The notes: generated from the letters alone by a model not told the origin. A DNA stretch of 56,266 nucleotides from Macrostomum lignano (GCA_002269645.1 NIVC01004185.1:1-56266), one strand, 5' to 3'. Positions 16,606-22,423 are shown, numbered from the stretch's first letter. Translations and numbers: made by a program.

Positions 16606-19600
16606 TCATCCACCCGTCAGGAACTCGTGCTGAAGCAGTTCCTGTGCTAAGTTTCTCTCCCTGCGGTCCTTGGCGGTGCAGCGGCTGTAGAAATCCCTCA
16701 GCTGTGCGGACCGGCCGTCCGGCAGGGCGGGGGCGCCATTGTTTACGAGGTTCAAAGCAACTTGATAAACGCTTCGAGTGCCACCGAACGGCCTCGCGCC
16801 AGACACCATCTGGAAGACCGAGCAGCCGAACGCCCAGATGTCCGACTCTCTGCTGTACTGCACGCTGTCCGACTCTCCCGCTCCAAGCAGCTCTGGCGCC
16901 ATGAAGTTCACAGTGCCTTTGGGTGACTGAGTGGAGGCTGAGATGTGGCTGACTGACTGCTCCAGCTTGATTGACAGGCCGAAATCGATCAGCTTGATTC
17001 GCGTGTTGTCATCACAAACAATTATGTTCGAGCAGTTGATGTCTCTGTGGATCACGGGCGGCTGCCGGCTGTGCAGGTAGAGCAGCGCGTGGCAGATCTG
17101 CGAGCGGTCGGTCAGTGAGCAGTCATCCTTCATGGGAGCATGGAACAGGAGCATCAAGGATGAACAATGCTCACCTGCTTGCTGAATTCTCGAATCGTCA
17201 ACTCTTCCAGTGGCCTATTGTCGATAAAACTCTCCAAGCTTTGGCCGTGTAGCAGCTCCATGAACACAACGACTGTGGCAGGCTCCGGCTGAGCGATGTA
17301 CAAGAACCTGACGATGTTGGGATGCAGCAGTCGGCACAGGTTTCCCTCGCTCTCAATAGCTCTCTGGATCTCTGTCCTCACAGAGGGCAGCTCATCACCG
17401 AGCTGCAGTGGCAGTCTGAGTGTCTTAGCAGCGCACGTGACGCCTCTGTCAGTGAGCACTTCGTGAACTTCGCCGAAGCCTCCCCTTCCGATGAGGCGAA
17501 CTGCAACCCATCGCTCCAGATATGGGCATCTACGAGCGTATGATGGGGTTCCGGACAACTTGTAAATTATAAAGAAACGCTAGATCGATCAGATTATCTT
17601 TTAAAAAGTTTTAGGAAGCCCCTCATTTAATAGATTTACACTACAAAACTTTAGTAGCTAGCCGCCTGGCTTAAAACATAGCTACCCGTATTATATCTAG
17701 AAGCAAACCAACTACCAGTATTTCGTCAATACTCCAAGCAGATCAACTTACCCTTCTGTCAAGCGGTCCAGCAGCTGCACCAACTCTAAATTTTGATGTT
17801 GCTCCGCTAGCTGCGTACAAGTCAGACCTCGACCGTCTCGATGACTCGGATCTGCTCCTTTGAATAGCAGCATCTTTGCAGCTGTCAGGTGACCCGCTTC
17901 GCAAGCTCGTGACAGAGCGGTCCGACTCTGACTATCTACGGAATTCACTGACGCACCGAGATCCACCAGTTTCTCAATAAGTTCATGATAATTTCCATCT
18001 GCTGCCAGCATGAGAGCAGTGGCTCCCGTGCTGTCTGGCAAATCGACATACTCTCTGCTGAATGTCTCGTCATTGGTCAGTCTTACGGAAAGAGTGATAT
18101 GCCGCTCAGAGATACAGAGACGGAGCATCTGCGTGATCTTAGCTGGCTGCATTCTAGACAGAGTGTCAGTTAAAAAAGAGTTCATGCCCTCAGTAGCCAG
18201 CGAGGCAAGGAAGCTCAGGATGGGGCCGGATTCTAAGAGCCAGTCGGGCTCGAGACCAAGAAAAGCAACGATGTTTTCTTGATGGAGACGAGAGCAGGCC
18301 ATGACTGCGCATCTGCGACGAAAAAGTAGTTTTGATTCCGGGCTTTGAATGCACTTTAGAACCTTTTTGATAACATGCAACTTTCGAGACTCTTCAGAAG
18401 ATTCAACTGTCTCAATGCAGAAGTTAACGGTAAGATCTTGGTCAGAAACTGTTTTTATAAGAAATTCGACACCTTCCCATCGACTTTTGTCGGCAGCAGC
18501 TTTTGCTGCTTCAATGCAGCAGTAGTCTTTCGTAGCTTGGTCAGCGACTTCCTGCACAAGCAACATAGCAACTTCGAAATGACACTTTTTTGCCGCAAAC
18601 TCCACTACTTTTTTGCAGCACTGATCTTTCACGGTTTGGTCCGGGATTTTCTCCAACAGAATTTTAACTACTTCCAGCTCATCTTTATTTTCGTTTTGAG
18701 CAGGATTTGCGACCGCTGTGGACTGAGCACTTCCGGTTTTTTTAGTTATTGTATCTATCAGGAATGACACCACCTCCCACTGATTCGATTGGTCGCCAAT
18801 AGCATCAGAGACTGCATCAGGCATATGTTGTGCAGTTAAAGGGTCATTTGATATCTTCAATTGAGCCAGTTGTTGTTCAGTATCGTCTGTCTTCTGAAAA
18901 TAATGGAGTGTCTGCTGTCTCTCTTCCTGCATTTCACGGAAATTACATTGCTCCCAGACTTGTCTCACTTGAGTAAATGTAGCCCGGTTTTCCGGGTTGA
19001 CTTGAGCAGTCATGCGCATAATCTCTATAGCTTTGTCCCGCTCTTGAGATGGCTCACGATTGCAACCAATGATCCTTCCTTGAAAGCTGTCAAAGTGTTT
19101 CCCCTCCAGCACCATCCTTTTATAATCATCCTTGGCACCTTCATCACTGAAGCATTCTCTGACAGAAAACTCAGCAAGAACCTCGACTATAAGGATTCCG
19201 TAGAGATTTCGATCTCCATATTTATCGGGCTGTTTGCAAGTGTCAGCATATAATTCGGGCAATAGACGTTCGAGTCCTCTCTTCTTTTCGAATTCCCAGG
19301 TGTCAGCTGTCATCACGGAATGAGGCAGACTCTTTGCCAGTCCAAAATCAGATATCTAAAAGAAGCAAAGAGCAGGCCGTTTTATTGCAGACTTTGCACT
19401 ATCAAATTACCTGTAAATCAATATTCAAAGCTAAATTACCTTCGAATTCAAATGACAATCGATTGGGATATTGTCAGCGGCCAAGTCTCTGTGAATGATA
19501 ACCTTCTCTTGGTTCTGTCTTTCTTGAAGGTACTTAAAACCATCGGAAACTTGAAGCATCCATAGGCTTTTAAGGCGAAGACTAGGCCTTTCCTGTAAAT

Positions 19601-22423
19601 TTTTGTGCAAACATGGTGACAGCATGATTCTAATACCCAACCCCAAAAAACATTCAGACATGACAGAAATACCTCCATCCGCAGCCTTTGGATTAGAAGT
19701 CGCATGCTACCGTATGGACAGAACTCCATAGTGTAGCCAGTGATAAGGTCGGTCCCGGATGGTCCATATGAGTTCAGTATGCGAACGGATGATTCGTGCT
19801 GACTAAGTTCTCCCATTGTTTCAACTTCCTTAGCTAGTCTCTTCTTTACCCTGAAGTTGATTTGTTTATAATGAGCGAATAATTTCGGTCTTAGAAACTT
19901 AGAGAGTTACTAGCTCTCTTAGAGAGAGAGAGAGAGAGAGAGATACCTACCTACCAACAGACCATTTTTAGTAGGAAATCAGTAAATATTCTACTGCATC
20001 CATAAATATTCATTTCCAAAAAGAGTTTCAGAGTTCAATAGAAATCATAACTACGACCATGAAGCATACAACACAATGATATAAAGCATACCAAGTCTCG
20101 CTCAGTGGAGTTTCGTTTTGCGAAAGCGCCTCGGCCTGAATTGTTTGTAAGATATCTATCTATCTATCTATCTATCTATCTATCTATCTATCTATCTATC
20201 TATCTATCCATCTATCTATCTATCTATCTATCTATCTATCTATCTATCTATCTATCTATCTATCTATCTATCTATCTATCTATCTATCCATCTATCTATC
20301 TATCTATCTATCTATCTATCTATCTATCTATCTATCTATCTATCTATCTATCTATCTATCTATCTATCTATCTATCTATCTATCTATCTATCTATCTATC
20401 TATCTATCTATCTATCTATCTATCTATCTATCTATCTATCTATCTATCTATCTATCTATCTATCTATCTATCTATCTATCTATCTATCTATCTATCTATC
20501 TATCTATCTATCTATCTATCTATCTATCTATCTATCTATCTATCTATCTATCTATCTATCTATCTATCTATCTATCTATCTATCTATCTATCTATCTATC
20601 TATCTATCTATCTATCTATCTATCTATCTATCTATCTATCTATCTATCTATCTATCTATCTATCTATCTATCTATCTATCTATCTATCTATCTATCTATC
20701 TATCTATCTATCTATCTATCTATCTATCTATCTATCTATCTATCTATCTATCTATCTATCTATCTATCTATCTATCTATCTATCTATCTATCTATCTATC
20801 TATCTATCTATCTATCTATCTATCTATCTATCTATCTATCTATCTATCTATCTATCTATCTATCTATCTATCTATCTATCTATCTATCTATCTATCTATC
20901 TATCTATCTATCTATCTATCTATCTATCTATCTATCTATCTATCTATCTATCTATCTATCTATCTATCTATCTATCTATCTATCTATCCATCTATCTATC
21001 TATCTAGCTTACCGCGCCCATTGGCTTTCCAGCTGCCTTAATCGTTTCCGGTGATCTTGTGTGCGTGCTTTCAGCTTGATTGGCTGCGGCAAGCAAGCTC
21101 GAAAGAGCTCGCTTCGCTCGCTCTTTCTCGCTATCTACTATCTATAGCCAGGACCTGCACCGGAGCGGTTACGAAAATTAGATTTCTCGGTAGTTGCACG
21201 TACTCTTTTGCACTACTTGAGTAGTCTGATTTTCGTTCGGCATAGCTGGTTCCAGCAGGTAGTTCCTCTGGATAAAAGCGCTTACCGCGCCCATTGGCTT
21301 TCCAGCTGCCTTAATCGTTTCCGGTGATCTTGTGTGCGTGCTTTTAGCTTGATTGGCTGCGGCAAGCAAGCTCGAAAGAGCTCGCTTCGCTCGCTCTTTC
21401 TCGCTATCTACTATCTATCTATCTATCTATCTATCTGTCTATCTATCTATCTATCTATCTATCTATCTATCTATCTATCTATCTATCTATCTATCTATCT
21501 ATCTATCTATCTATCTATCTATCTATCTATCTATCTACCTATCAATCTATCCATCTATACCGCATAATAGATGTATTTTCTTACCTATTTCTTTCTGAAT
21601 TGTAATATCCCTGTCACACAGTCTCGAAAGCGCCATTTATTTTTTGTATGTAGGCTTCTGCGGAAAAAAGTAAAAAGTTACAAAATCAGAAAATGTTACA
21701 GAGTTAGTTAAATTGTTCGAGCTTGGTTAATCAGTTTTTACTTACCAATTACCGATTTTCTATTGCAAAAAATAATGAAATTATTTATCTCGATATAGCA
21801 ACTTCATCTAATGTTGCAAAGATTTTCGGTAGGGTTTTTGTCGACAGGAAATTTTTAGTACCTAGTTCTGAACAGTCTTGGCCATTTATAAGCAAGTGAC
21901 ATATGTATTTAAGTTTTGGCAGAGAAGACGAACTAAGCGCACACATACGCCTTCTAAAACGATGAGAGTATTCAGTTAGTTTGGACAGCAGCATCTTCTG
22001 TACACTGCAGCACAATAGCCAACCAAAACTTAAACAATCTCAATCTCAGCTACACCTTTCGTGCATTTTTTGAATGTTGAGACTCGTAGAGTATTATCTT
22101 TCCAGCCGCGGGCACAGCACACAGAAAGTACAGTCTTTTAAGTTAAGAAAATTTTAATTGTTCACAATCTTCATCTGCAGCGAATACTATACGAGATTAT
22201 GACTGCTATTTCTTGTCCAAGCGACCTGTTGCTGTTGCTCACACTGCAGGCATCCTTACCGGCGGAGACAGGCTCGCAGTCGGCGTTTCGTGTATGCTAC
22301 ATGTATGCTCGCGCCAGAGTCTTGAGCTATGCGTTCTGGGTTAACGCTGATGTCCTTTTCTTTAGGAACTTTCAACAGCGTCAATTTTACTGGATCATAC
22401 TCTACTCTGAAGATGATTGCCAT
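16606..22423 (-). CDS. Tandem kinase: TKL/TK-like pseudokinase - helical repeats - ankyrin - STE-like kinase (paralogue B), ~981 aa
   Basis: Exons 22423-22260, 19850-19673, 19592-19440, 19355-17752, 17529-17175 and 17097-16606; all are GT-AG, phase-compatible, and total 2946 nt. N-terminal domain has LAKEVETM, MEFCPYGS, HRDLAADN and ISDFGLAK. ANK motifs GATALMLAA and SRTALSRAC. C-terminal kinase has IGRGGFGEV, CAAK, HRDINCSN, DFG and APE. Exon 1 (GCCATGG start, 2.4-kb intron) is the least certain part. Confidence 0.75.
20153..21005. repeat. (TATC)n microsatellite, ~850 bp, inside the first intron of gene B
   Basis: Near-perfect TATC array. A second array lies at ~21405-21557. The 'YLSI' ORFs are artefacts. 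Confidence 0.97.
21007..21418. repeat. 139-bp direct repeat (21007-21145 and 21280-21418) bracketed by TATC arrays
   Basis: The two copies differ at one base and have a period of 273 bp. Confidence 0.9.

Follow-up and report, generated by a model that had tools for sequence, protein, structure and literature searches.

Contig NIVC01004185.1 of assembly GCA_002269645.1 (Mlig_3_7), from the free-living flatworm Macrostomum lignano, was analyzed over its entire 56,266 bp, referred to below as the window. Its minus strand carries a gene, hereafter the target gene, that comprises two kinase folds separated by a repeat region; we call these folds the N-domain and the C-kinase. Rebuilding the transcript from its junction sequences joined six exons into a 2946-nt open reading frame (ORF) of 981 residues with no internal stop, and all five introns (2409, 80, 84, 222, and 77 nt) are bounded by GT and AG (Table 1). 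According to Pfam, the product contains two kinase domains (Pkinase / PK_Tyr_Ser-Thr) at residues 53-297 and 710-978, with ankyrin (ANK) repeats at residues 603-694. A first-pass annotation of the same DNA had already spliced the ORF fragments into a single chain, with exons 2 to 6 exactly right, and the motifs that it quoted are all in place, i.e., IAQDSGASIHVA at 22330-22295, LRACLR at 22279-22262, HRDLAADN, DFG, and four repeat motifs described below.

The Mlig_3_7 annotation was derived from RNA sequencing by StringTie/TACO assembly, cutting of the assembled units at trans-splice and poly(A) sites with TBONE, and TransDecoder (PMC5730564). It includes GenBank entry PAA48300.1 (BOX15_Mlig024686g1 / Mlig024686.g1; UniProt A0A267DG63; 915 residues), whose coding sequence spans 19816-16606 and is identical to residues 67-981 of the rebuilt ORF. 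This identity independently confirms exons 2 to 6, including the 17752/17529 ANK-to-kinase junction, which had been named beforehand as the point on which the single-chain reading would turn and which is used in this transcript-derived model. The same junction (LDRLTEG/CPYLERW, the slash marking the splice) is read across in the independent paralog models P0001, P0002, and P0282 from another annotation (...LDRLTEGCPYLERW...), and a 522-codon ORF on the minus strand (17748-19316) matches M. lignano proteins at 96, 92, and 81% identity. No splicing is needed to connect the first kinase fold to the repeats, since both lie inside exon 4. The two kinase folds and the repeats between them are therefore part of one polypeptide, in one public gene model. 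The first-pass annotation did not recognize this combination of domains. No conserved family arranged in this way was found outside M. lignano, and no kinase-ANK-kinase architecture or family was found described in the literature.

Table 1. Features of the target gene and of its surroundings in the window
Feature	Coordinates	Strand	Description
Candidate exon 1	22260..22423	-	Residues 1-54 plus 2 nt; ATG start; GTAAGG donor, phase 2; would encode beta1-beta3 of the N-terminal kinase-like domain; absent from public model
Putative intron 1	19851..22259	-	2409 nt, GT..AG; 5' flank or outron if exon 1 is unused
Exon 2	19673..19850	-	alphaC to beta5 of kinase-like domain; annotated start codon (MGELSQ) at 19816
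Exon 3	19440..19592	-	alphaE and catalytic loop HRDLAADN (19493-19470); both flanking intron positions conserved with paralog
Exon 4	17752..19355	-	1604 nt, single exon; DFG 19349-19341; kinase-like C-lobe to about 18960
Exon 4, degenerate repeats	18818-18291	-	33-residue, ANK-like
Exon 4, helical linker	18290-18051	-	
Exon 4, canonical ANK repeats	18044-17769	-	
Exon 4, end	17752	-	Split Gly codon GG/A, phase 2
Exon 5	17175..17529	-	STE/MAP3K-like kinase N-lobe; GRGGFGEV 17489-17466; beta3 Lys in CAAKTL 17435-17418
Exon 6	16606..17097	-	STE-like kinase C-lobe; HRDINCSN 17049-17026; DFG from 16986; MAPE from 16902; stop 16608-16606
Gene C	22751..24765	-	ANK and STE-like kinase (catalytic loop within 22751-23299); adjoins target upstream; absent from GenBank gene calls
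Gene A	7731..10044	-	Annotated, 674 residues, ANK and STE-like kinase (catalytic loop within 7731-8276); more distant paralog
rve fragment	13385-14248	+	Mobile-element fragment
THAP fragment	15298-15711	+	Mobile-element fragment
HTH_32 fragment	46685-47179	+	Mobile-element fragment
Rhodopsin-type G protein-coupled receptor ORF	25992-27527	-	511 residues; no exact product on record
ORF without Pfam match	31480-33096	-	538 residues
Phospholipase B gene	33723-35567	+	Single exon, 614 residues, annotated

The N-domain has the kinase fold, the tyrosine kinase (TK)/TKL-style loop HRDLAADN, and the DFG motif that the first-pass annotation had reported; this loop contains neither the lysine of Ser/Thr kinases nor the arginine of tyrosine kinases. 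Its alphaC glutamate, Asp150 of HRD, Asn155, and Asp168 of DFG are retained, so that both aspartates whose absence may define a pseudokinase are present. In the PDB, its best 60 sequence matches are JAK1/2/3 and EGFR, over residues about 58-177 only, and its best 50 fold matches are tyrosine kinases, led by JAK1, CSF1R, ABL, FGFR, and KIT, with template modeling (TM) scores of 0.6 to 0.79. The N-domain thus resembles tyrosine/TKL kinases and not RIPKs. Its close relatives are specific to M. lignano, and the earlier description of this part as RIPK-like is not supported. When 1.84 billion representatives were searched exhaustively, scores below 1e-30 were limited to three proteins, namely, P0001 (the target's own cluster) and P0127, both from M. 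lignano, and P0128 (8.9e-31), in which a short kinase fragment occurs in 15 copies that add up to this score. P0129 (504 residues), the remaining relative from M. lignano, followed at 1.6e-25, and plant receptor-like kinases (RLK/Pelle) came next at about 1e-24 and weaker; a search with P0129 as the query returned no further family members. With the spliced N-domain as the query, a word-index search for homologs listed only six weak plant RLKs and none of P0001 to P0003, and it was not used for any claim of absence. As P0129 retains a GSFG glycine loop and a VIK lysine along with the loop HKDLAIDN, the target N-domain belongs, in degenerate form, to an H[RK]DLAxDN family.

The tails of these relatives were also compared. 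The C terminus of P0127 gives a subthreshold Pfam Death match (E value, 0.0025; 18.4 bits against a cutoff of 22.6), which is the sole RIPK1-like hint. The tail of P0129 has no Pfam Death match and yielded only spurious PPR matches in a PDB sequence search, and no similarity between the two tails was detectable. P0127 itself (UniProt A0A1I8JDI5; 902 residues) contains several copies or fragments of H[RK/L]DLAxDN domains in tandem and may be either a multikinase death-domain protein or a collapsed or chimeric model.

The N-lobe of the N-domain depends in part on a candidate first exon. Over the 2.9 kb that precede exon 2, this is the sole sizeable ATG-initiated exon with a GTRAG donor in the required phase. 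Its codon-usage log-odds (0.084) lies between the noncoding null distribution (0.021±0.099) and the coding one (0.165±0.081). Pfam kinase hidden Markov models (HMMs) gave no match to it, their alignment beginning at residue 53 and HMM position 41, nor did tblastn with the N-lobes of P0129 and P0127 against 19817-22750 return anything at 22260-22423, and no further copy was found in the window or at the paralog loci. On the acceptor side, position 19850 coincides in aligned position and phase with a phase-2 intron of the related kinase gene BOX15_Mlig029749 (locus L004); this intron directly precedes ALKKLQKEITLL, which aligns without gaps to VKKRLAKEVETM, the target sequence just past its phase-2 junction. 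The two introns that come after it in BOX15_Mlig029749 (…FSRA/GLETS and …FRAK/LSDFG) likewise match those of the target (…RLRME/ERPSL and …LNSK/ISDFG). Because intron positions and phase are conserved between the two genes, an upstream N-lobe exon certainly once existed. The 19850 acceptor is also consistent with [T/C]TNCAG, the motif of M. lignano trans-splice acceptors (PMC8629364), which makes spliced leader (SL) addition at exon 2 a live alternative. We treat 22423-22260 only as a candidate for the ancestral N-lobe exon, one that may or may not still be used.

In a MAFFT alignment, which agrees with the first-pass annotation, IAQDSGASI of the candidate exon falls on the glycine loop and ACLR on VAIK, which places Arg54 in the beta3-lysine column. 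An AlphaFold2 model built from that alignment, and so not independent of it, shows strands at residues 26-34, 39-44, and 50-55 ahead of alphaC (pLDDT, 66), with Arg54 rather than a lysine on beta3 and Lys46 falling in the loop of a hairpin. With HMMER, by contrast, local alignments to several kinases set VAYT, Lys46, and Arg47 on VAVK, with Thr45 or Arg47 in the lysine column and Lys46 adjacent to it. No GxGxxG was found in residues 1-66 in any alignment, the aligned segment being IAQDSGAS. The reported degenerate glycine loop therefore stands to this extent, although it lies on an unverified exon, and the reported absence of a VAVK lysine is subject to the ambiguity of these alignments. The N-lobe is either glycine-less with an arginine at beta3 or, if translation begins at the annotated Met67 inside alphaC, devoid of beta1 to beta3. 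With or without exon 1, the N-domain is thus without a canonical ATP-binding N-lobe. On its sequence, it is a predicted pseudokinase, very likely catalytically defective, and a truncated one if Met67 is the start.

Several further observations concern the 5' region. The putative intron 1 contains two very long, nearly perfect microsatellites, (TATC)213 at 20153-21006 and (CTAT)39 at 21404-21558, which could break short-read assemblies there. No AATAAA or ATTAAA was found on the minus strand of 22200-22750, between the gene C stop (22751) and exon 1; the first signal of this type past the target stop is at 16048, and read-through from gene C is possible. A scan of 22200-22800 for bacterial-type promoters and terminators was discarded as irrelevant in a eukaryote. 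The first intron of BOX15_Mlig029749g1 (L004, about 8058-8138) has an apparent GC donor (TTTTTAG/GCAAGC … TTTTAG/CTCGT), i.e., it appears to be a GC-AG intron. P0003 (UniProt A0A1I8JDJ0), an older model of a paralog locus, joins a gene C-like N-lobe exon (…IRDFSKQ) to the equivalent of exon 3 (ERPRLCLK…). It was rejected as evidence that an N-lobe exon of the upstream gene is spliced into exon 3, since the model has two out-of-frame stretches and is unreliable as a transcript; it does show the tandem arrangement of gene C and target at a second locus.

Between the kinase folds, the first-pass annotation had distinguished helical repeats from ankyrin repeats. The latter are those found by Pfam. 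The former, marked by WEVVSFLI, LEVVKILL, FEVAMLLV, and WEGVEFLI at residues 358, 392, 425, and 458, are spaced by 34, 33, and 33 residues, and the same repeat motif recurs in paralog P0004 with a period of exactly 33 residues. The homologous repeats of P0004 are scored by Pfam as Ank_2/Ank_4, whereas in the target Pfam scores residues 603-694 only. An AlphaFold2 model of residues 314-700 (17-sequence alignment; pLDDT, 76) forms unbroken helical hairpins from residue 358 to residue 700. A Foldseek search with this model returned ankyrin structures for all of the best matches (DARPin fusions, ankyrin-1, ankyrin-B, and ankyrin-R) over 310 to 420 columns, although the TM scores are low (0.23 to 0.38). 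As modeled, the middle of the protein is one continuous ankyrin-type solenoid; of its roughly ten repeats, the initial four or five are degenerate. The helical repeats are thus not a separate domain type but degenerate ankyrin repeats, 33 residues long, that run without a break into the canonical ones.

The C-kinase is STE/MAP3K-like by sequence, as had been proposed: its best PDB matches are MAP3K2 (7.6e-27) and MAP3K5/ASK1, followed by WNK1, PAK1, and STK24/25. It contains GRGGFG, Lys735, HRD, DFG, and APE motifs. In its loop HRDINCSN, the usual catalytic-loop lysine is replaced by Asn839, a departure from the HRDxKxxN pattern. That lysine normally contacts the gamma-phosphate of ATP. The same replacement occurs in gene C (HRDLNCAN), while the lysine is kept in the more distant gene A (HRDIKCSN), so that the change is subfamily specific. 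By the three-residue rule, the C-kinase is predicted to be active; Asn839 leaves its activity uncertain. The kinase that had earlier been designated the effector is thus itself atypical, although its set of catalytic motifs is near complete.

Module-by-module BLASTP separates the origins of these parts. The N-domain is 36.6% identical to P0127 and 33.5% to P0129, against about 30% over 85 residues to the neighboring kinases. The degenerate repeats share 40% identity with P0004, and the linker and canonical ANK repeats share 59 to 67% with the ANK + Mab-21-like proteins P0004, P0008, P0013, and P0005; by BLASTP, this linker-ANK part does not match the ANK region of either gene A or gene C. For the C-kinase, identity is 66.5% to gene C and 37.7% to gene A. 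At the seam between solenoid and C-kinase, the ANK exon of the target ends in ...LLDRLTE-G with a Gly codon split GG/A in phase 2, and exon 1 of P0004 ends in ...LLDPSGA-G, whose Gly codon is split identically and falls at the same place in the alignment; Mab-21-like exons, rather than kinase exons, come next. The ANK-to-kinase intron of gene C is also in phase 2, and its acceptor context (AACCCCATCATAG before and ATGCCCAT after the splice) matches that of the target (AACCCCATCATACGCTCGTAG before ATGCCCAT). Since the module seams fall at conserved phase-2 introns, exon shuffling between phase-compatible introns is indicated. Judging from these sequence matches, the gene draws on three local source families: a kinase of the P0127/P0129 type, the ANK + Mab-21-like family, and the ANK + kinase family of the neighboring genes, with gene C likely to be the donor type of the kinase cassette. 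A fusion onto the family kinase cassette had been proposed before, and the C-kinase identity and shared acceptor context agree with it, but three families contributed and not two. Compared with its copies P0001, P0002, and P0003, the target is 95.5, 88, and 86% identical in the N-domain and 86, 89, and 80% identical in the C-kinase N-lobe. The N-domain is therefore not decaying faster than the remainder, identity between copies being as high as or higher than in the C-kinase.

In M. lignano, the ANK + Mab-21/cGAS-like family includes P0004, P0008, P0010, P0011, P0013, and P0014, along with locus L003 (8001-13335), and in its members 33-residue ANK repeats precede a Mab-21/cGAS-like C-terminal region. 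This region scores 25.7 bits against Pfam Mab-21_C, gives weak PDB matches (E value, about 0.03) that are all to cGAS, and contains a GS...DSDID motif. Most platyhelminths are reported to lack cGAS-like receptors (cGLRs) beyond Mab21-like proteins (PMC9980059).

Elsewhere in the window, gene C contains a perfect in-frame tandem repeat of 42 nt x 8 (23815-24151; peptide QQPQGAQSLATQLR) between its ANK and kinase parts. Between the kinase genes are fragments of mobile elements, i.e., a retroviral-type integrase core (rve), an ORF with a THAP domain, and a transposase-like HTH_32 ORF. Satellite arrays at 41698-45779 and 48534-53135 (periods of 33, 19/38, 23, 28, 16, 11-13, and 12 nt) dominate the right third of the contig, which also has a GC-rich stretch (63-66%) at 52-56 kb in which the long ORFs are without Pfam matches.

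Taken together, we put at roughly 60% the probability that this is one real, expressed, lineage-specific gene that joins a predicted pseudokinase, an ANK solenoid, and an STE/MAP3K-like kinase by exon shuffling and that most likely encodes a regulated MAP3K-like signaling protein. Its anatomy and origin are those described above, whereas its regulation and its pathway, probably stress related or innate immune-like, are what we infer from them. In such a protein, a partner or ligand would dock on the ankyrin solenoid, and the pseudokinase would act in cis on the C-kinase as an allosteric or dimerization regulator, by analogy with JAK JH2-JH1 or GCN2; alternatively, the pseudokinase might be a bait. 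Several points weigh against this interpretation. Exon 1 (residues 1-55) is missing from PAA48300.1, whose start corresponds to Met67 in exon 2, and the exact N terminus depends on whether the candidate exon is used. The catalytic residues retained in the N-domain could mean residual or atypical activity, and Asn839 departs from the canonical loop in the C-kinase. The public model is a product of short-read assembly. Searches of the literature and of supplements for Mlig024686 returned no mention of the gene and no expression, phenotype, or interaction data, and as no ortholog was seen outside M. lignano, conservation gives no support for function.

Other explanations share some of this evidence. 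In line with the decoy or sensor inferred in the first-pass annotation, the gene could be a convergent counterpart of plant tandem-kinase immune receptors, in which the N-terminal pseudokinase would be a decoy or bait for a pathogen effector, the ANK module would contribute to sensing, and release would activate the C-kinase. Such a reading would fit the presence of a pseudokinase and a kinase in a single chain, the location of the gene in a tandem cluster of lineage-specific paralogs, and an ANK module common to the ANK + Mab-21/cGAS-like family, with the output swapped at a conserved phase-2 intron, as is typical of innate-immune families. The parent family of the N-domain may have a death domain, given the subthreshold match, and plant tandem kinase proteins (TKPs) act via effector binding by one kinase-like domain (PMC6170490). 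However, the kinase folds of the target are not adjacent, its domains do not share their origin with those of plant TKPs, the matches to the death domain and to cGAS are weak, and the pseudokinase is the more conserved part between paralogs, whereas a bait would be expected to be more diversified; we consider this explanation unlikely. Its broader form is quite doubtful. It would make the gene an animal analog of plant tandem-kinase receptors, in which a flatworm ANK sensor has alternative outputs (a MAP3K-like kinase here and a cGAS/Mab-21-like nucleotidyltransferase in paralogs) and a pseudokinase decoy derived from the P0127 kinase family. Both kinases could instead be active in an RSK/MSK-like intramolecular relay, the N-domain binding ATP unconventionally, as with the relocated lysine of WNK. 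The retained alphaC glutamate, Asp150, Asn155, and Asp168 would be consistent with this, as would Lys46, one or two residues from the VAVK lysine as placed by HMMER, and P0129, which has the H[RK]DLAxDN loop and keeps both the glycine loop and the lysine. The lack of GxGxxG in every alignment, the placement of Arg54 on beta3 by MAFFT and AlphaFold2, the loss of all of beta1 to beta3 under the annotated Met67 start, and a loop without the Lys and Arg that normally contact the gamma-phosphate make such a relay improbable.

Two further explanations question the gene itself. According to one, the gene is a young, functionless chimera that arose through extensive duplication and recombination in a recently polyploid genome and that is transcribed while decaying. 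It is found in M. lignano only, its surroundings comprise repeats, a retroelement integrase fragment, and a THAP ORF, both kinase domains are substituted at catalytically important positions, and the first exon is uncertain. Against decay, an ORF of 2.7 to 2.9 kb is intact across five correctly phased canonical introns, the gene is present in a transcript-based annotation, and at least two other copies (P0001 and P0002) are in frame with 84 to 98% identity in every module covered, their models being incomplete and ending within the C-kinase N-lobe; such a chimera therefore seems rather improbable. The other explanation is an artifact in which short-read assembly of a polycistronic unit merged a pseudokinase-ANK gene with a kinase gene. 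About 7% of assembled M. lignano transcripts are multigene precursors, and many genes are SL trans-spliced (PMC5730564, PMC8629364), which counts in its favor, as does the clearly chimeric and frameshifted older paralog model P0003. A merger nonetheless appears very improbable: the 222-nt intron is phase compatible while the unspliced ANK exon frame stops immediately, the sole ATG-initiated ORF of exon 5 covering the N-lobe start reads through the acceptor, the ANK-intron-kinase layout is also found in genes A and C, and TBONE, which was built to cut such units at SL and poly(A) evidence, left the gene whole. A single regulated signaling gene thus remains our preferred interpretation.

Already on deposit as a hypothetical protein, the gene has an architecture that varies, in a lineage-specific way, the known pseudokinase-kinase, kinase-ANK, and ANK-kinase themes. 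What is new here is its origin by exon shuffling, the rereading of its repeats as ankyrin, a candidate for the first exon, and the finding that the catalytic loop is atypical in both folds. The immediate value is modest and consists of a correction to the domain description, plus the candidate 5' exon, for an already deposited, one-species gene model. If functional, the gene would be a clean animal case of a pseudokinase-scaffold-kinase protein, recently exon-shuffled and with parent families that are still identifiable, and would be useful for studying how pseudokinase control of a kinase arises. Its ANK module also ties it to the ANK + Mab-21/cGAS-like family in a phylum reported to be mostly without cGLR signaling (PMC9980059), which hints at a lineage-specific signaling or defense repertoire in a genetically tractable flatworm.

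Among known systems, JAK and GCN2 have, like the target, a defective kinase fold N-terminal to a catalytic one in the same chain, and the target N-domain matches JAK kinase domains best. However, the target lacks the FERM/SH2 domains of JAK and the RWD/HisRS domains of GCN2, its folds are separated by about 400 residues across the ankyrin solenoid, its output kinase is STE/MAP3K-like rather than a tyrosine or eIF2alpha kinase, and its two folds, about 30% identical over 85 residues, are not an internal duplication. The kinase-then-ANK order of RIPK4 and ANKK1 is found in the N-terminal two-thirds of the target, contiguous in exon 4, but the N-terminal kinase of the target is not RIPK-like (HRDLAADN in place of HxDLKPxN), is predicted to be inactive, and is followed by a second kinase after the repeats. 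Plant TKPs such as WTK1/Yr15, RPG1, Rwt4, and Sr62 also combine two kinase folds, one of them degenerate, in one cytosolic protein by fusing kinases from different families, and plant RLK/Pelle kinases are the nearest non-Macrostomum sequences to the target N-domain (E values of 1e-25 and weaker). Plant TKPs nevertheless carry their kinase domains directly in tandem, and these derive from RLK/Pelle kinases (Klymiuk et al. 2018, PMC6170490), which is not the arrangement of the target; the latter is of independent animal origin, with nonadjacent domains and an STE-like C-terminal domain. The ANK-then-kinase order of its C-terminal two-thirds is that of ILK, TNNI3K, and genes A and C, and the target differs from these two neighbors in drawing its ANK module from the ANK + Mab-21-like family and in carrying an extra N-terminal kinase fold.

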